A DNA stretch of 57,921 bases from contig NC_068987.1 of NCBI RefSeq assembly GCF_001194135.2, positions 88,539,954 through 88,597,874 on the forward strand, read 5' to 3'. Positions 3,140 to 52,071 of the stretch are shown piece after piece; the first letter of the stretch is position 1; each line of letters opens with the position of its first letter. This DNA is from Octopus bimaculoides (taxonomy: Eukaryota). The position numbers and the translations under genes are program-made. Under the pieces are notes generated by a model. That model did no database searches. It had not been told where the DNA came from and was given only the letters and a program-made list of their open reading frames with translations.

Positions 3140-3323
3140 TGGCGGGGGAAGGATGAGTCGATTACATCGACCCCCAGTGTTCAGCTGGTACATATTTTAT
3201 CGAGCCTGAAAAGAGGAAATGTAAAGTCGACCTCGACGGAATTTGAACTCAGAACGCAGCGACGAGAGAAGTACCGCTAAGCATTTCGTCCAGCGTGCTA
3301 ACGATTCTGCCAACTCGCTGCCT
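3140..3323 (-). mobile_element. SINE family A (tRNA head ggcggcgagctggcagaa)
   Basis: A-box/B-box-like head and shared core ctttcatcctttcggggtcgataaa; about 22 copies in window. Confidence 0.85.
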
Positions 3324-3341
3324 TATTATTATTATTATTAT

Positions 3342-8830: not shown

Positions 8831-9086
8831 ATGCGCACAAGGATTGTGAGAGAGTAGCAGACAGAAAAGGGGCGGGTACAAAAAACAAAACCCTACAGAA
8901 TGGTTCAAGGTGTAGAGTTTGTCTGACATCGTCTGGATTTCATGAATGCACCAAATTTTTATGTCACCTTTGAACTGTCCCAAATTTATTGGGCCATTGT
9001 GGCCAATAAAAAAATGCACAATATTGTTGTTGTTGTTGTTATTATTATTATTAATATCATCATCAACATCATCATCATCATCATTA

Positions 9087-9256
9087 AGGCGGCGAGCTGG
9101 CAGAAACGTTAGCACGCCGGGCGAAATGCTTAGTGGTATTTCGTCTGCCGCTATGTTCTGACTTCAAATTCCGTCGGAGTCGACTTTGCCATTCATCCTT
9201 TCGGGATCGATAAATTAAGTACCAATCAAGTATCCCCCTTCCCACAAATTATTTAC
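9087..9256 (+). mobile_element. SINE family A
   Basis: Same head and core. Confidence 0.85.
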
Positions 9257-9324: not shown

Positions 9325-10470
9325 TTTTTAATCTGCAAATTTGCTACAATCACTTACTGAGACACACCCAGCGTCCTAGGGCGAGTGAAGGATAAGAGAT
9401 GTTACAGTATGATTGAAAGCTTGGGAAGGGGAAATGGCAGGGGCAATAGCGAAATATTTTCATGTAATATAACACAGATATTTAAATAAATAGGCCTTTT
9501 TCTAAGGTTCTGGGCAGCACAATCTATCGGATTTCTCTGAGACATGGTTCTCCTGGGATCTTACCTAGATGTTTCTGACATCGCATTTTTATCATACCTA
9601 GGGCACCTACAATAACAAGAACATTTCCGCTTTAAGATTCTACATCTTTTGTTTTTCAATTTCCAGGTCCTTATATTTACTAAATTTCTCAAATTCTTTT
9701 ACAGATATATTTTTATCAGTGGGAAGACTTAGATCTATCAATCTACAAGTGTTTTTTTTTTCTGTCTTTAATAACTATGTCTGGTCAATTAGCCTGGATC
9801 GTCTGGCTGTGTTGACTGGAAAATCCCAGATAGTGACATTTTTACCTTCAACGACAAGCTCAGGATGATGTTCATACCAGTAAGCAGGAGTGTTGATCAT
9901 GTAGTGTTTACATACTTTCCAATGTAAAAACTGTCCTACCCGATCGTAGCGATTTTTGTATTAGTTTGGTGTCTCGAGACGAGATGGTCTACTGTTTCGT
10001 CAAATGTGTCACAAAATCTTCATTTAGGGTCAGAATCATTTTGAAGAACGTTAGCCTGGAATCTTTTGGCAAGCAAGCTTTGATCTTTTGCCACTAATAT
10101 GAAACCTTCAGTCTCTGCTTTCAGTCCTGAATTTCTCAGTCACTGATGGGCTGATGCGTTATCTACATCAACATTTCGACTTCGTAGTATATTCTGTCCA
10201 TGCAGAGGCTTCTGGCTCCACTGATCCTCAATTTGTTTCTGGCCTTTCTTTTCGCAATCTGCTTGATCCATTTTGGTTACTTTGTGGCAGTGGTTTCAGG
10301 TTCTTTATCTGTTCCAGGGTTAATGCCAAGTTCCCTTGAGAATTTGCAAGCTTCCTTGACAATAGAATGTCGTTTTTTGCTGCTTTCGTGTTTGCACACA
10401 AGCACCTCTTGTCTTGTAGTTGTAGAAGTGGTATGCTGCTGGATGGTAGAGGTAGTTGGGCGCTAATCAA
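9325..10470 (-). mobile_element. R4/Dong-like LINE 3' fragment (CCHC plus RLE region), pseudogenised
   Basis: Minus: LRNSGLKAETEGFILVAKDQSL, K*RFCDTFDETVDHL, YDRVGQFLHWKVC, HHPELVVEGKNVTIWDFP, VIVGALGMIK..HLGKIPG; tail runs into (AAT)n (TTA on +, 9262-9320). Confidence 0.85.
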
Positions 10471-12480: not shown

Positions 12481-12648
12481 GGTTTCAAATTTTGATATAA
12501 GACCAGCAAGATCGGGCGGAGTTGGGTAAATCGATTATATCGACCCCCAGTACTCAACTGGTACTTTTTTTTATCGACCTCGAAAAGATGAAAGGCAAAG
12601 TCGACCTCGGTGGAATTTGAACTCAGAACGTAAAGACGGACAAAATGC
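12481..12648 (-). mobile_element. SINE family A, 5'-truncated
   Basis: Core and 3' tail present; abuts a family C copy. Confidence 0.75.
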
Positions 12649-18126: not shown

Positions 18127-18578
18127 GGTGAACAAAAGTGTGGAGTGGAGTGAAAGTGTTTGAGGAGGTCAGGATAACACATGCAAAACTAAAGAGAGAT
18201 TTAAAAAAGAATGTTGCGATCGAGAAGGTGAATCTTAGTGACCTTTTTGTGTGCACAGTGTGTGACAGACCGTGCCTTTCTTTTGCTGGGTTCAAATCTC
18301 ATTTGCGGACCCATGAAAAACCGAACCTCCACTAACTATTCTGCCTATGTATATCTATACACCTTTCAATGCTGTGTATGCCATAAGGTCTGCAAATCTA
18401 ACGGAAGCCACAATGGTAATTTTAAGATCCACAAAGATCAGAACTTAACTGCAGCTTTTGGTGGTCCAAGTCGGATATGCAATCTATGTGGGTGTCTTTT
18501 CAATACATTTCCTGGTTTAGATAGCCACAAACACCATGATGGATCTAAGGTGTAGTCCATAAGGAGTAGACAACACCA

Positions 18579-20934: not shown

Positions 20935-20999
20935 TATAACAATATATAATACCGGTTTCAAATTTTGGGTACCACGTATAACTAGAAGAACTGCATATT

Positions 21000-21215
21000 T
21001 TTTTCTTTTCTACTCTAAGCACAAGGCTCGAAATTTTTGGCGGGAGCCAGTCGATTAGATCGACTCCAGTACGCAACTGGTACTTAATTTATCGACCCCG
21101 AAGGGATGGAAGGCAAAGTCGACCTCGGCGGAATTTGAACTCAGAACGTAAAGGCAGAAGCAATACCGCTAAGCATTTCGCCCGGCGTGCTAACGTTTCT
21201 GCCAGGTCGTCACCT
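21000..21215 (-). mobile_element. SINE family A with 17 bp TSD
   Basis: tagaagaactgcatatt at 20983-20999 and 21216-21232. Confidence 0.9.
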
Positions 21216-21247
21216 TAGAAGAACTGCATATTATATAGAGAGATCAC

Positions 21248-21440
21248 AAGGCGGTGAGATGGCAGAACTATTAGCATTTGGTACGCCTCTACGTCCCGAG
21301 TTCAAATGCCACCGAGGTCGACCTTGCTTTTCTTTCTTTCGGGATCGATAAAATTAGTACCAGCTGAATACTGAGGTCAATGTAATCGACTTACCCACTT
21401 TCCAGAAGTTGCTGACCTTGTGCCATAATTTGAAACCAAT
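21248..21440 (+). mobile_element. SINE family A, inverted relative to upstream copy
   Basis: Head ggcggtgagatggcagaa. Confidence 0.8.
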
Positions 21441-27852: not shown

Positions 27853-28725
27853 NNNNNNNNNNNNNNNNNNNNNNNNNNNNNNNNNNNNNNNNNNNNNNNN
27901 NNNNNNNNNNNNNNNNNNNNNNNNNNNNNNNNNNNNNNNNNNNNNNNNNNNNNNNNNNNNNNNNNNNNNNNNNNNNNNNNNNNNNNNNNNNNNNNNNNNN
28001 NNNNNNNNNNNNNNNNNNNNNNNNNNNNNNNNNNNNNNNNNNNNNNNNNNNNNNNNNNNNNNNNNNNNNNNNNNNNNNNNNNNNNNNNNNNNNNNNNNNN
28101 NNNNNNNNNNNNNNNNNNNNNNNNNNNNNNNNNNNNNNNNNNNNNNNNNNNNNNNNNNNNNNNNNNNNNNNNNNNNNNNNNNNNNNNNNNNNNNNNNNNN
28201 NNNNNNNNNNNNNNNNNNNNNNNNNNNNNNNNNNNNNNNNNNNNNNNNNNNNNNNNNNNNNNNNNNNNNNNNNNNNNNNNNNNNNNNNNNNNNNNNNNNN
28301 NNNNNNNNNNNNNNNNNNNNNNNNNNNNNNNNNNNNNNNNNNNNNNNNNNNNNNNNNNNNNNNNNNNNNNNNNNNNNNNNNNNNNNNNNNNNNNNNNNNN
28401 NNNNNNNNNNNNNNNNNNNNNNNNNNNNNNNNNNNNNNNNNNNNNNNNNNNNNNNNNNNNNNNNNNNNNNNNNNNNNNNNNNNNNNNNNNNNNNNNNNNN
28501 NNNNNNNNNNNNNNNNNNNNNNNNNNNNNNNNNNNNNNNNNNNNNNNNNNNNNNNNNNNNNNNNNNNNNNNNNNNNNNNNNNTATATATATATATATATA
28601 TATATATATCTTTCATCTTCTACTTGATTAGACTGTGGCCATTCTACGGCACTGCCTCGAGGAGAATTTTAGTGAAACTAATCGACCTCATTATATTTTT
28701 TTATAAGCCTGATACTTGTTCTATC

Positions 28726-28937
28726 TTTTCTACTCTAGGCACAAGGCCCGAAATTTTTGGGGAGGAGGCTAGTCGATTATATCTATTCCAGTACGTAACT
28801 GGTACTTAATTTATCGATCCTGAAAGGATAAAAGGCGAAGTTGACCTCGGCGGAATTTGAACTCAGAACGCAATGACGGACGAAATACCGCTAAGCGTTT
28901 CGCCCGGCGTTCTAACGTTTCTGCCAGCTCGCCGCTT
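28726..28937 (-). mobile_element. SINE family A nested in a family B 3' module
   Basis: Flanked by tacttgttctatc (28713-28725) and tacttattctatc (28954-28966). Confidence 0.85.
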
Positions 28938-35507: not shown

Positions 35508-36151
35508 ATATGTGTGTGTGTGTTGTGTGTGTGTGAGTGTGTATGTGTGCGTGTGTACGTGTGTGTACGTATATGTATATGCGACGGGCTGCTGAACAAT
35601 TACTGTCTACAAAATTCGTTCGTCTCGCAGGGAATTGCTCAATCTGTTGCAACAGAAGACACGAAGTTGCCGCGCAATAAGATCGAACCCAGAAATATGC
35701 GGTCAAAGCAAATTTCTTCACCACATAACTATGTCTGATGCACCTCATTGTCAAGGCTTTTACGTACAGTGCAACAGCATTTCTTCAAAATCTGGAATAC
35801 AACACCAAACTTCAGCTAGACAGATCAATACGTTCAGTAGACTGTTTATGATATTAAATACTTTGTAATTATCGGATTGTGACCTACAAGGAAACTACAT
35901 TGACACGCGTGTACATTAACATATCTCCGTTTATACAAATATACACCTTTTCTTTCACTTCATTTGAAGAAACTATTCTCTAATTAAAGTTATTTCCGGA
36001 ATTATGGAAATGAATTAATACAAATTATTGATGATAATCCATAAATTATCTTCAATGATTTAGTAACAGAAAATGTCATTCAATTTCAAATATGGTTGGA
36101 TCGCTCGTATGTCTCACTGTCAGTAGAAATGCTGCGATCAAATGCGATTAT

Positions 36152-36369
36152 GTTCTTTTCTACTCTAGACACAAGGCCTGAAATTTTGGGGGAGGGGGCC
36201 AGGTGATTAGATCTACCCCAGTACGCAACTGGTACTTAATTTAATGGTCCCAGAAACGGTGAAAGGCAAAGTCGACCTCAGTAGAATTTGAATTCAGAAC
36301 GTAAAAACAGACGAACTACCGCTAAGCATTTCGGCCGGCGTGCTAACGTCTCTGCCAGCTCGCCGCCTT
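36152..36369 (-). mobile_element. SINE family A with 13 bp TSD
   Basis: caaatgcgattat at 36139-36151 and 36370-36382. Confidence 0.9.
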
Positions 36370-38508: not shown

Positions 38509-38717
38509 GGGAATAAATTATTATTCCAACCTTACAGGTAAAATTCAGTATAATAATATTAGACCGAATTTCGTAATATATAATATATATGTATATAACT
38601 GATTTAGAAACGAACCACCATTCCACAATTCAGTCAATGAAAAACCCGTCAAAAACCATGTTGTGAGATATATACCATACAAAATGCTAATCTAAAATAC
38701 TAATCTAAAATTTTAGA

Positions 38718-38874
38718 TCGACCGCAGTTTGCAACTGTTTCTTAATTTATCGATCCCGAACGGATGAAAGGTAAAGTGAACCTCGGCAGAATTTGAACTC
38801 AGAACGTAAAGACAGACAAAATACCGCTAAGTATTTTGCCCGGCGTGCTAACGTTTCTGCCAGCTCGCCGCCTT
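38718..38874 (-). mobile_element. SINE family A
   Basis: Head and core. Confidence 0.8.
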
Positions 38875-39064
38875 AGATGCTTAGCAGCATTACGTCCGTC
38901 ATTTCGTTGTGTGTTCGCATTCGCCAGGACCCTGAAATGGGTCGAGGAGGGAACAACCGCTAGTAATTGGGAGTCGGGATAATGGAATATTAGTTAATCT
39001 GAAAGTAATATACTACAAGGGTATTCAGTTCACCATTGTATTGCTGTAACCAATTTACCAATCT

Positions 39065-43739: not shown

Positions 43740-44015
43740 TCTAAAGGAAGTGAAAGGGGACTGTTGAAAGCTGCTGATTGTATGGCTAGACTAAAAGGTG
43801 TTTGGTTCTGCTCGTCACTTATAGATTAGCCGATGCTATTAACAGAGTGACAACAACATCGTCTACAGGACCATCCATAACAACTGGCGTTTCTACTATA
43901 GTCACAGCAGGAATATTTCAATGTGACGTTTTGTCTGTATTTCTTTTCGCACTAGTAATGAATCCCTTGTCATCCTTGTTAGGGAAATACGAAGGGGACA
44001 TAAGATCTGCAGATG
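43740..44015 (+). mobile_element. Non-LTR reverse transcriptase fragment (R4/Dong-like)
   Basis: GIFQCDVLSVFLFALVMNPLSSLLGKYEG resembles the RT motif GIFQGD.LSP.LF...NPLS. Confidence 0.7.
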
Positions 44016-44077
44016 AAAGAAAACTTAGGGTTTTCTGGATGACCTTGGACAATTTCTTTGTAATATTTACAACACTC

Positions 44078-44287
44078 AAGGCGGTGAACTGGCAGAATCG
44101 TTACCGCGCCGGGTAAAATGCTTAGTCGCATTCTGTCTGTCTTTACGTTCCGAGTTGAAATCCTGCCAAGGTCGATTTTGCCATTCACCCTTTCGGAGAA
44201 ATAAGTACAATTTGAGTACTTGGGTCTATCTAATCGACTTAGCCCACCCCAAAATTGCTGGCCTCGTGCCAAAATTTGAAACCAATA
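44078..44287 (+). mobile_element. SINE family A
   Basis: Head and core. Confidence 0.8.
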
Positions 44288-48395: not shown

Positions 48396-49315
48396 CAAGG
48401 CTTTTCTTTTTCTGAAGATCATCATAATAATAAAAACAACAATCAACATATTTATATAAAATATTATTGCAAGTAAAATTCAAAACAAAACCTATTTAGA
48501 TATTATTATTATCTTCTCTTCATTTGCAATCAACTTCGTCGTCATTTTCGACGACATTTATAAGAGAAGAAAATCTCTTTCAGCACCACCGCCCTTTCAT
48601 ACATTTCTACTCTCATTTCCTGTTCCTTTCCTCTCCTTCCTCATTCGCCTTTATCTCTCCCTACCTTTTCCTCGTCTCCTTTCTCCTCTCTCCCCTCTCC
48701 CCCTCCCTCTTCCCTCCTCCTTCTAATCTCCGCCATTATAATTGCTATCACTCCAATAATTCCATTTTGTATGACTCCCAGTGAAATATCCTCACATTCA
48801 TCTCTATATAATTAATGCTAATTCAAACATAGCCAAATAAATGAAAATTTCACAAGGAGAAGAAAAATAAAAAAAAGACTCTAGATTGAAAAAAAGAACA
48901 AATAAATTTATAAAGAGAATGAAGTTAAAAAGTAAGTCGCCATTGTTTATCGGTTTTTAAAGCTAAAGAACCCGCGGTACAAATTTTGGGGGATCAGATA
49001 CTGTTTCTCTAACATAACTTAAATTCGCTGTTTTCCGTTTAATTGAATAATCTCGACAATAACATTGTAGTCCAAGAAAGAATTAGGCATGAGTTTTTAA
49101 CAGAAGTTATAAAGCTGCTTGATATTTATACATATATATGTACATAAATGTATACACATACACGCACACATATACATAATCTTTTATATATATATATACG
49201 CATATATATGTATATACATATACGCACATATATACATATCTATATATATATGTAGACATAGGTACATATATGTATAAACATGTACATATATATATATATA
49301 CACATATATATACAC

Positions 49316-49696: not shown

Positions 49697-49758
49697 ACAG
49701 CGTTTGGCATCTTCTTCATTGTCCGACACCAGGAACGAAAAGCGGGAAAGAGAAAAAA
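49697..49758 (+). CDS. 3' part of putative transmembrane exon (TAFGIFFIVRHQERKAGKRK), 5' part hidden in N-gap
   Basis: Hydrophobic run followed by a basic stop-transfer cluster. Donor AA|GTGTGA at 49758/59 is phase 2 and matches the phase-2 acceptor at 50355 (AA+G=Lys). The donor is only moderate. Confidence 0.6.
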
Positions 49759-50354
49759 GTGTGAAAGAAAGAAGGAGAAAGACAGAAACAGAAATAGAGA
49801 GAGAAGGGGATGGAGAGGGAGTGAGAGGATGCCAAAAAGGAAGAGAAAATGAAGAGAGAAAGAGAGAAAGAGAGAAAGAGAGGAAGAGAGAAAGAGAGAG
49901 AGAAAGGGTAGTAAATATATGATGCAAGGGTTAAATTAAATTCAACTTAGGTTGATTGCCAGTTTAAACAGCAAAACGTCTCTCAAAAGAGTTTCATTAT
50001 TGAATTCACCATCTATTTTTACACGCAGCATTTAAAATAATGTCTACGCTTTCAATGGAACCGTCAAAATGTACCTTCCGTAGCTCGGAAAATGTTTTAT
50101 AAAAGTATTTAGCGCCATAGATCAGAGATTGAATGTGTCACGCTGCTTTGTGAGTTGTATGACGTCATAGAATACTATGATGTCATCGGTTGTTAGGAAA
50201 ATAGCCTTTTACCAACCTGATTTCAAAACGGATTTTACGGCGTAAAAGGGGCGCCAAACATTTAAATGCCATTGCAACTTTGTGCTGATCGACAACAGCA
50301 ACTTTCGCCCTTTACCGATTCTTGAAGAAATCGTTTCTATTTCCTTTATATTAG

Positions 50355-50898
50355 GATGAATTATGTAAATAAACGTGTCAACTACAACCGGGCAAACAAT
50401 TTAGCAAGGGAAAACCTGTCAGTAAAATATGGAATGGTAGTGCCCACGATCAATTCAGTTCCGCACTATATGCTCAATTTTTGCTACACAGGTTCCAGGA
50501 AACGACGCGACAAGAAAGGCCACGCCAACACATGCCCACCCTACGCTACTCTAAAGGATGATAAGATTTCAAGTAGTCCAGACTTTCGCCTTCATAGTCC
50601 GTATGCTACAGATTCGAATTACTCTTGTAAATCTTGTCCTTCGAACACAACTTGTAATTTCTACTTGCATGATAAGGAATTATATTCTCCCAGAGCTCCT
50701 TATGCTGTTTTCGATGAATCAGAAGAATATAGATCGATGACAAAAGACGGTAACTATGTACTACAATACCCGTATGCAACCAGCCTAACAGCCTCAGGTT
50801 CGAAGACGACGTGTCAAAGCGCGCAAGTTATACCTCCCTACGCTTTGGATGTCCAACAAACTTTAGGTATGATGCAACAAAGTGACTGTGTGTATTGA
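50355..50898 (+). CDS. Terminal coding exon: Tyr-rich cytoplasmic tail (180 aa, five xPYA motifs) of a putative single-pass receptor
   Basis: Stop-free 180-codon frame in unique, non-repetitive sequence. It starts right after a polypyrimidine acceptor (tttctatttcctttatattag|G ATG, phase 2), ends at TGA 50896-50898, and AATAAA follows about 95 nt later. Confidence 0.75.
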
Positions 50899-50993
50899 AG
50901 ATGTAATATTTGCTTTTAGAAACATTTTAAAAACATACGCTTTTGAGTTTTCATTTTTGTCATTCGTTCCATACAATGTTTATCAAATTAGTC

Positions 50994-50999
50994 AATAAA
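50994..50999 (+). promoter_or_regulatory. Polyadenylation signal candidate for the receptor-like gene
   Basis: AATAAA 95 nt after the stop, followed by a T-rich tract. Confidence 0.5.
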
Positions 51000-51170
51000 T
51001 CTTTCTGTCATTTTCCGCCCCGCCATAATTAGACTTGCTCTTTACTTATTGTCTTCATTTACATTTAAGCTTACTTTAAAAACAAATTTTGACAAAAGCT
51101 GTAGATTTCTGCAAGTACACACACACATACAAACACACATACAACTACACATACATATATATACGTATTT

Positions 51171-51264
<94 letters not shown>

Positions 51265-52071
51265 ATATGTATACATATACATATNNNNNNNNNNNNNNNN
51301 NNNNNNNNNNNNNNNNNNNNNNNNNNNNNNNNNNNNNNNNNNNNNNNNNNNNNNNNNNNNNNNNNNNNNNNNNNNNNNNNNNNNNNNNNNNNNNNNNNNN
51401 NNNNNNNNNNNNNNNNNNNNNNNNNNNNNNNNNNNNNNNNNNNNNNNNNNNNNNNNNNNNNNNNNNNNNNNNNNNNNNNNNNNNNNNNNNNNNNNNNNNN
51501 NNNNNNNNNNNNNNNNNNNNNNNNNNNNNNNNNNNNNNNNNNNNNNNNNNNNNNNNNNNNNNNNNNNNNNNNNNNNNNNNNNNNNNNNNNNNNNNNNNNN
51601 NNNNNNNNNNNNNNNNNNNNNNNNNNNNNNNNNNNNNNNNNNNNNNNNNNNNNNNNNNNNNNNNNNNNNNNNNNNNNNNNNNNNNNNNNNNNNNNNNNNN
51701 NNNNNNNNNNNNNNNNNNNNNNNNNNNNNNNNNNNNNNNNNNNNNNNNNNNNNNNNNNNNNNNNNNNNNNNNNNNNNNNNNNNNNNNNNNNNNNNNNNNN
51801 NNNNNNNNNNNNNNNNNNNNNNNNNNNNNNNNNNNNNNNNNNNNNNNNNNNNNNNNNNNNNNNNNNNNNNNNNNNNNNNNNNNNNNNNNNNNNNNNNNNN
51901 NNNNNNNNNNNNNNNNNNNNNNNNNNNNNNNNNNNNNNNNNNNNNNNNNNNNNNNNNNNNNNNNNNNNNNNNNNNNNNNNNNNNNNNNNNNNNNNNNNNN
52001 NNNNNNNNNNNNNNNNNNNNNNNNNNNNNNNNNNNNNNNNNNNNNNNNNNNNNNATGTATATATGTATAGT

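Follow-up and report, generated by a model that had tools for sequence, protein, structure and literature searches.

The tyrosine element CC1 of the Robo receptors reads PYATT, Crk has a proline before its tyrosine (GPYAQP), and the ITSM (immunoreceptor tyrosine-based switch motif) of PD-1 is TEYATI. Pairs formed by an ITIM (immunoreceptor tyrosine-based inhibitory motif) and an ITSM, which are read by tandem SH2 phosphatases, have a spacing of 20-30 residues. The CC0 element of Robo is of the form YAx-hydrophobic, the tyrosines of CC0 and CC1 are targets of Abl, and the order and spacing of these elements are flexible (PMC8045725). An exon of the Dscam tail (..EICPYATFHLLGF..) carries CPYATF in shrimp, fly and Daphnia, and is absent from the SH2 sites predicted in the same paper (PMC6851185). 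In Crk, Y221 (YAQP) is an Abl site which is read by SH2 once phosphorylated (PMC2689226). Here we analyze an open reading frame (ORF) of Octopus bimaculoides that contains five copies of a motif of this type, xPYA. It lies in a stretch of 57,921 nucleotides of contig NC_068987.1, hereafter the window, and an initial annotation made from the sequence had read it as the cytoplasmic tail of a receptor. The explanation that best accounts for the whole of our results, and which is put forward tentatively, is that of a small gene of its own, not a receptor exon, in which the PYA copies would be multivalent docking motifs, most likely of the phosphotyrosine type.

The closest described systems were compared with the locus one by one. 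As in Robo, a short Tyr-Ala motif lies in a poorly conserved, presumably disordered region, and motifs 1 and 3 of the octopus protein, PYAT(L/I) and PYAV(F/L), match YAx-hydrophobic; this match spans just 3-4 residues, which is too short to decide on membership of the Robo family. Unlike the octopus protein, Robo combines five Ig and three FN3 domains with a membrane span and with the proline-rich elements CC2 and CC3 (no LPPPP-type motif is present in alignment A3, described below), and it carries two or three copies of the motif versus four or five here. Motif 1 (TCPPYATL) recalls the C-P-Y-A-T-hydrophobic string of Dscam, only CP(P)YAT(L/F) being held in common; in Dscam the string is a single copy in a large receptor of the immunoglobulin superfamily (IgSF), with no homology beyond it. 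The likeness to Robo and Dscam pointed out in the initial annotation thus holds for a motif of 3-4 residues and does not extend to homology, none being detected by exhaustive phmmer. Crk has the same succession of Tyr and Ala, in a flexible linker. Its +3 proline, a determinant of both SH2 binding (pYxxP) and Abl recognition, is found in no octopus motif. The ITSM of PD-1 shares the Y-A-T-I/L core, and the 20-30 residue spacing of the xPYA motifs resembles that of ITIM-ITSM pairs. The ITIM/ITSM consensus is nevertheless not matched: position -2 is P, A, S or Y instead of I/V/L/T, and of all the motifs only 1 and 3 have a hydrophobic residue at +3. Scaffolds such as p130Cas, Dok, Gab and LAT are comparable in that individually conserved tyrosine motifs are set tens of residues apart on a disordered chain, phosphorylation being only putative in the octopus case. 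They carry PH, PTB or SH3 domains or a membrane span, whereas the octopus family has only an N-terminal block and a basic cluster; no targeting module was detected in it (no Pfam match, and no MG start for myristoylation). Judging from these comparisons the octopus protein would act in the manner of the multi-tyrosine docking regions found in the tails of Robo and Dscam or in the Cas, Dok and Gab scaffolds. The family belongs to none of these, and would be an unnamed, lineage-restricted family with a motif consensus of its own.

Coding status and homologues of the open reading frame

The ORF almost certainly corresponds to a real conserved gene. Compared with the homologous ORF of a second octopus (contig L001) it shows 41 differences, of which 28 are at codon position 3, and a single indel, 3 nt long. 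The ratio of non-synonymous to synonymous substitution rates (dN/dS, Nei-Gojobori) is 0.167, against about 2 in the other two frames. Because of this ratio, of the position-3 bias and of the length of the sole indel, we consider the ORF a real coding sequence; a non-coding exon, which the initial annotation had named as a possible refutation, is contradicted by the same values. The first 46 codons alone contain 5 synonymous and 2 non-synonymous differences between the octopuses. For a pair of decapodiform genes dN/dS is 0.17 at a dS of 0.58. One could still imagine that the frame is open by chance, or that the element is conserved but non-coding, the database protein being then an artefact, given that the database model is clearly mis-built and that flanking non-coding DNA is more conserved than the ORF between octopuses. 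This is effectively refuted by the position-3 bias and the dN/dS of 0.17 in two independent lineages, and by a frame which is kept open across the octopus-cuttlefish divergence with indels in frame.

Among database proteins the ORF has a single match, UniRef A0A0L8IHV9 from Octopus bimaculoides, which is 139 aa long (MKLKS...) and labelled an "uncharacterized protein". A literature search with this UniProt accession gave nothing, and exact look-ups of the products of the window ORF and of P0001 gave no match. In the A0A0L8IHV9 model the first 46 codons of the ORF, which are under purifying selection and partly conserved in cuttlefish, are treated as intron, and translation begins in a 13-nt A-rich "first exon" (Table 1). 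This exon is probably a gene-prediction artefact and the model as a whole is likely a mis-annotation; we did not retain it, its splice removing the N-terminal block conserved in cuttlefish.

Homologues were found in two steps of increasing distance. The second member of the 90% cluster of A0A0L8IHV9, P0004 (179 aa), comes from contig L001, a 1.6-kb Logan contig which is collinear with positions 49730-51164 of the window and evidently belongs to another Octopus species. A profile built on the 180-aa ORF and P0004 retrieved two further clusters, P0005 and P0006 (E ~1e-14). The P0005 cluster (152 aa, members P0007 and P0008) is drawn from many Logan runs, among them ERR12945500, short-read data of the cuttlefish Acanthosepion esculentum (bioRxiv 10.1101/2025.04.22.649952). 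P0006 (148 aa) is located on a 659-kb ENA contig of a related animal, taken here as another decapodiform. The cuttlefish and decapodiform homologues P0005-P0008 align to octopus residues 20-164. In total the family ranges from 148 to 180 aa, on contigs of two octopuses, a cuttlefish and one decapodiform-like animal.

The cuttlefish homologues were reached only by a profile including the N-terminal 46 residues. A single-sequence search with the 134-aa part of the protein returned only its own database entry. Exhaustive phmmer with these C-terminal 134 residues against 1.84e9 representative proteins returned only itself and two repetitive bacterial proteins, which were discarded as spurious since they matched via DGRYVLF-type repeats. 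A last profile search, with four sequences and 5,237 word-matched candidates, added no further homologue, and no receptor protein was found among the homologues by phmmer or profile searches. Pfam and PDB searches of the ORF and its homologues revealed no relationship: a Pfam match to AglB_L1 is below the family cut-off and missing in the orthologue, and a PDB match to an antibody hinge has E = 1.2, both being attributed to chance. Neither the window nor the 20 kb surrounding P0006 contains a paralogue. With present data the family appears to be confined to coleoid cephalopods and previously unnamed. Studies of cephalopod genomes have so far focused on expanded families, e.g. protocadherins and zinc fingers; conserved genes that are proper to a lineage and bear clear signs of function are less common and more difficult to detect. 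In the present case a gene constrained in octopus and cuttlefish was concealed behind a lone, mis-modelled database entry, with no named homologue from another species in the libraries searched.

The motif array and its conservation

The five xPYA motifs at 50536-50850 are all in the frame of ORF 50356-50898. Numbered from the ATG at 50356, their tyrosines are residues 63, 83, 116, 140 and 162, separated by 20, 33, 24 and 22 residues, in full agreement with the initial annotation. Five copies of PYA were obtained in none of 100,000 residue shuffles of the 180-aa ORF, and four or more in none of 200,000 shuffles of the 134-aa part; five copies of any tripeptide whatever occurred in 2 of 20,000 shuffles. 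As for the DNA itself, a scan of the whole + strand of the window gives five matches to CCNTAYGCN, and all five are inside the ORF and in one frame, compared to an expectation of 0.02 per 405 nt, the length of the exon. The codons differ between copies (CCC, CCG or CCT for Pro, TAC or TAT for Tyr, GCT or GCA for Ala), and blastn of the exon against itself gives matches of just 8-12 nt, at the motifs themselves; in agreement with the initial annotation, the array is not a simple DNA tandem repeat. More generally, an origin of the motif at the DNA level (tandem repeat, microsatellite or array of binding sites) was rejected: the codons vary, the copies keep strictly to a single frame, and the pattern is found nowhere else in the window. 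The constraint on the PYA copies acts on the peptide, not on the DNA.

The octopus and cuttlefish proteins were compared over the 143 aligned columns of alignment A3, which contains six sequences. Their identity is 41% over these columns. Four motifs, including the residue at +2, are invariant in all six sequences: (P)PYAT, APYAV, PYAT and PPYAL. All 16 motif columns are thus invariant (hypergeometric P = 1.8e-7), compared with 25% identical columns outside the motifs and the N-terminal block. The spacing from motif 3 to motif 4 is 24 residues in both octopus and cuttlefish; from motif 4 to motif 5 it is 22 residues in octopus and 20 in cuttlefish. The comparison of the two octopuses by itself is unable to test the conservation of the motifs, as 15 unchanged PYA residues out of 15 have P = 0.21. 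The expectation that PYA would be conserved in an alignment of orthologues while the spacers drift is therefore borne out for four motifs, and fails for the copy at Tyr83, which is restricted to octopus. We regard the four copies as probably ancestral and the fifth as a putative lineage-specific addition in octopus. The flanks of motif 2 (L.SPYAT...Y) resemble the cuttlefish form of motif 4, and motif 2 may be an internal duplicate. It is carried by an insert of about 30 residues which also adds four cysteines (CKSC...C and one other) and two N-x-S/T sequons to a Cys-poor family. The octopus protein has seven cysteines in total, each of them shared by the two octopuses. At the other end, the decapodiform proteins stop 4 residues past motif 5, and the octopus proteins continue with an extension of their own (Table 1).

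Other tyrosines of the protein behave differently. The 17 Tyr in 180 aa and the sequence EEYRSM (residues 123-128) are present as initially reported. The richness in tyrosine is however an octopus trait, the cuttlefish protein having only 8-9, and seven tyrosines are invariant across the family. The proposal that EEYRSM is a YxxM site for PI3K p85 had to be abandoned: the methionine is replaced in the second octopus (M128I, EEYRSI), and the decapodiforms have EEFRKK or DDFHKN, with Phe in place of Tyr. Several motif readings made by eye were also discarded as unconserved between lineages, i.e. PPxY/LPxY ligands of WW domains, a proline-tyrosine nuclear localisation signal (PY-NLS), the calcineurin motifs LxVP and PxIxIT, the PP1 motif RVxF and the ALIX motif YPxnL.

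Table 1. Coordinates of the features discussed in the text (window numbering)
Feature	Position	Strand	Remarks
"First exon" of model A0A0L8IHV9	48919..48931	+	13 nt, A-rich; ATGAAGTTAAAAA followed by GTAAGT; joined to acceptor at 50491
AP-1-like site	50134-50140		TGTGTCA (TGAGTCA in second octopus)
CRE palindrome	50160-50167		TGACGTCA; only perfect one in window; 196 nt before ATG
CRE-like site	50178-50185		TGATGTCA
GC-rich element	50239-50255	+	GGCGTAAAAGGGGCGCC
Non-coding block directly 5' of ATG	50239..50355	+	one mismatch (50292) in 117 nt between octopuses; dS 0.25
TATA-like box	50261-50267	+	TTTAAAT; 95 nt before ATG
Complete uninterrupted coding sequence	50356..50898	+	180 codons and stop (50896-50898); from ORF call, dN/dS and homologue alignment
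N-terminal block, most conserved protein part	50413..50514	+	aa 20-53; NLSVKYGM(V/L)VP.I....Y.LNF..TG.RK(R/K); 20 of 35 columns identical octopus vs cuttlefish
Basic cluster, end of N-terminal block	50497-50517	+	RKRRDKK
Motif 1, Tyr63	50536..50553	+	PPYATL; probably ancestral; TC(PPL)PPYAT(L/I) in 6 of 6 sequences
Octopus-only insert	50566..50658	+	~aa 71-101 (~30 residues); contains motif 2 and CKSCPSNTTC; gap columns in alignments A2 and A3
Motif 2, Tyr83	50596..50613	+	SPYATD; both octopuses only
Motif 3, Tyr116	50695..50712	+	APYAVF; probably ancestral; Y...APYAV(F/L) invariant
Motif 4, Tyr140	50767..50784	+	YPYATS; probably ancestral; (Y/F)V(L/I).(Y/S)PYAT(S/N)(L/F)
Motif 5, Tyr162	50833..50850	+	PPYALD; probably ancestral; PPYAL(D/H)
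Octopus-only C-terminal extension	50851..50895	+	VQQTLGMMQQSDCVY; vs second octopus 3 non-synonymous and 0 synonymous differences
Likely 3' UTR	50899..51020	+	AATAAA at 50994-50999; conservation drops to background ~20 nt past signal
SINE-like copies (examples)	3156-3325, 9085-9224, 12531-12635, 20981-21360, 28724-28931, 36147-36369, 38713-38877, 54586-54752

Gene boundaries and the receptor-tail interpretation

The distribution of conservation around the ORF was analyzed in both lineages. Between the two octopuses the conserved sequence forms a compact unit from ~50207 to ~51016, in a background of ~77% on both sides; at the 3' end identity is 93% over 50896-51030 versus 77% over 51031-51164. 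In decapodiforms the conserved unit consists of the ORF, ~280 nt upstream and 57 nt downstream. The block which can be aligned between species comprises only the ORF and ~150-280 nt upstream. The ORF has its own ATG, in a good context, located 19-21 codons before the N-terminal block in both lineages, and in both octopuses an in-frame TGA (50323-50325) lies 10 codons 5' of it.

The upstream sequence resembles a promoter. An AP-1 site, a cAMP response element (CRE), a GC-rich element and a TATA-like box follow each other in this order in octopus and in decapodiforms, with a gap of 19-26 nt from AP-1 to CRE across the two lineages. The decapodiform block begins with TGAGTCA (AP-1), followed 19 nt on by TGACGTCA (CRE; both sites within L003 495-521 and L002 ~9733-9759) and ~80 nt later by GGGCGTAGAAGCCCGCC and TT(A/T)TAAT. 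We infer that the gene is a transcription unit of its own, since in both lineages the ATG is preceded by AP-1, CRE and a TATA-like box and, in octopus, the stop is followed by AATAAA. The block at 50239-50355 is far more conserved between octopuses than the coding sequence (91.5%) and has stops in all three + frames. Our guess is that it likely corresponds to the core promoter and the 5' untranslated region (UTR). A structured RNA or an editing-type duplex was rejected for this block, with no Rfam match, a fold z-score of -0.6 and inverted repeats of only 12-13 nt. The AP-1/CRE arrangement makes transcription inducible by a stimulus (cAMP, Ca2+ or activity) possible, and an inducible promoter is a conjecture to which we give somewhat less than even weight. 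If the promoter is functional, the gene would be a candidate for regulation by activity, in animals for which markers of that kind are sought.

A few points speak against this view of the locus. The transcription start, the lack of introns and expression are deduced from conservation and motifs only, and AP-1 and CRE are each perfect in just one of the two octopuses. In addition a good acceptor-like site, tatattAG followed by G, ends at 50354 in octopus, two bases before the ATG; an intron in the octopus 5' UTR is possible, an upstream coding exon much less likely.

The acceptor-like site is also one of the arguments for the interpretation given in the initial annotation, in which the ORF would be the terminal exon of a gene for a single-pass receptor, akin to Robo, Dscam or another IgSF member, with the 180 residues forming the cytoplasmic tail. 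Further arguments are the basic cluster RKRRDKK, which resembles a stop-transfer sequence, the occurrence of PYAT-type motifs in Robo and Dscam tails, and the 17 assembly gaps of the window which, together with the long introns of octopus, could hide upstream exons. Against these, the acceptor-like site is unconserved in decapodiforms, where the in-frame translation upstream of the ATG is unconserved as well; an acceptor-like site of the cuttlefish upstream region is absent from the ENA contig. The basic cluster adjoins no membrane span, because 46 conserved, non-hydrophobic coding residues precede it. All homologues lack a transmembrane segment: their 19-residue Kyte-Doolittle means peak at 0.5-1.02, well below the ~1.6 that is usually read as a membrane span. 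The ATG is equally placed, with the promoter-like AP-1/CRE/TATA block upstream of it, in both lineages, a poly(A) signal lies downstream in octopus, and alignment between species is limited to the ORF and the short upstream sequence described above. Finally, no Pfam domain was detected in the non-repetitive ORFs of at least 45-50 aa on both strands of the 58 kb, a scan which has little power for short exons and does not see into the 17 gaps; other parts of a receptor were sought by hydrophobicity on the + strand, where only low-complexity DNA was picked out; and the homologues include no receptor. The cytoplasmic-tail reading does not survive these results: the ORF is very probably not a receptor tail, and the specific proposal of a last receptor exon is retained only as a very improbable one. 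Reiterated tyrosine motifs beside a basic cluster do not alone signal a receptor tail.

The initial annotation had also named an extracellular location as a possible refutation. A secreted or extracellular protein would account for R-K-R-R as a furin-type site (R-x-K/R-R), for the octopus sequons NLS, NYS and NTT and for the seven cysteines with their CxxC-x5-C stretch, the Tyr-rich repeats being then structural or adhesive. As far as sequence tells, no homologue has an N-terminal hydrophobic signal sequence or an evident signal peptide. Only one cysteine (TCPP) is conserved outside octopus, the Cys-rich stretch belongs to the octopus-only insert, and the cuttlefish basic cluster, DRKKKPK, is no furin site. 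We hold this proposal to be highly improbable, even more so than the receptor exon.

Returning to the small gene of its own, the octopus-family protein has a polar and basic composition, and no fold is recognised in it. The mean predicted local distance difference test score (pLDDT) from AlphaFold2 is 31-37; these runs used alignments of one and four sequences, so that the low pLDDT is weak evidence for disorder. The product is probably a small stand-alone protein, and probably disordered.

Candidate functions of the PYA motifs and surrounding sequence

The PYA copies may act as short linear docking motifs binding one partner multivalently. They would be phosphorylated on tyrosine and then read by SH2-type domains. 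Such phosphotyrosine docking is possible, at rather less than even chance, and three points favour it. The motif tyrosine is never replaced by Phe in four motifs and six sequences, when Tyr and Phe interchange elsewhere, at residues 125 and 134 (Y125F, Y134F). In Robo CC0/CC1 and at Crk Y221, the tyrosines targeted by Abl are followed by Ala. The Y-A-x-hydrophobic form of motifs 1 and 3 recalls the ITSM core of PD-1. Several features run counter to such docking: at +3 the motifs do not have the Pro of an optimal Abl site, at -2 they do not have the hydrophobic residue of ITIM/ITSM, and their Pro at -1 is not among the recognised determinants of SH2 binding.

A serious rival, which we rank behind phosphotyrosine docking and consider on the unlikely side, is that the copies work without phosphorylation, as repeated ligands of a repeat-type or peptide-binding domain, as Yxx-hydrophobic adaptor signals or through beta-strand contacts, the tyrosine serving for packing. 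The invariant core consists of P(-1), Y, A(+1) and +2, whereas recognition by SH2 domains depends mainly on +1 to +3 and seldom on -1, and position +3 varies among motifs (L/I, F/L, S/N and D/H). Motif 1 (YATL/I) and motif 3 (YAVF/L) fit Yxx-hydrophobic signals, and the conserved non-tyrosine module NLSVKYGM.VP together with the basic cluster suggests other binding modes or nuclear targeting. This rival has to contend with the absolute conservation of the motif tyrosine, never Phe, which favours a role of the hydroxyl, and with Tyr-Ala being a documented context of Abl targets. Should phosphotyrosine docking be correct, the family would represent a lineage-specific addition to tyrosine-kinase signalling. 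Its most detailed form, a long shot at this stage, combines all the above features: a coleoid-invented, intronless, AP-1/CRE-driven gene, inducible by activity or cAMP, whose product, a small disordered protein, would be phosphorylated on four or five PYA motifs and multivalently recruit an SH2 protein (such as a tandem-SH2 phosphatase or an Abl/Crk-type module), making it a lineage-specific adaptor for immediate-early signalling in the nervous system of cephalopods.

In the window, coding evidence is confined to the PYA gene; the window also contains the 17 assembly gaps mentioned above and microsatellites. The open frames at 18132-18552 (+) and 43790-44113 (+) look like decayed parts of transposons, with a C2H2-type CxxC...HxxxH pattern and a reverse transcriptase-like sequence (...IFQCDVLSVFLFALVMN...); neither of them reaches E <= 0.1 against Pfam in a concatenated scan. 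Rfam matches to mir-3149, mir-297 and SCARNA7 at 51119-51284 (-) score 15-30 bits versus gathering thresholds of 65-100 and fall in a CA/TA microsatellite beside a gap; they were dismissed as low-complexity artefacts. On the ENA contig the decapodiform gene has no other recognisable gene within 10 kb on either side and stands alone among repeats, as in octopus; ORFs of the long interspersed nuclear element (LINE) type, with RVT_1 and an endonuclease-like N-terminus, lie ~8-10 kb upstream of it (L002 1-2366, - strand). In the octopus window a short interspersed nuclear element (SINE)-like sequence of ~170-220 bp recurs about 20 times, in either orientation (30 blastn matches with identities of 71-89%). 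These copies agree with the SINE expansion, specific to octopus, that the Sepia genome preprint mentions.

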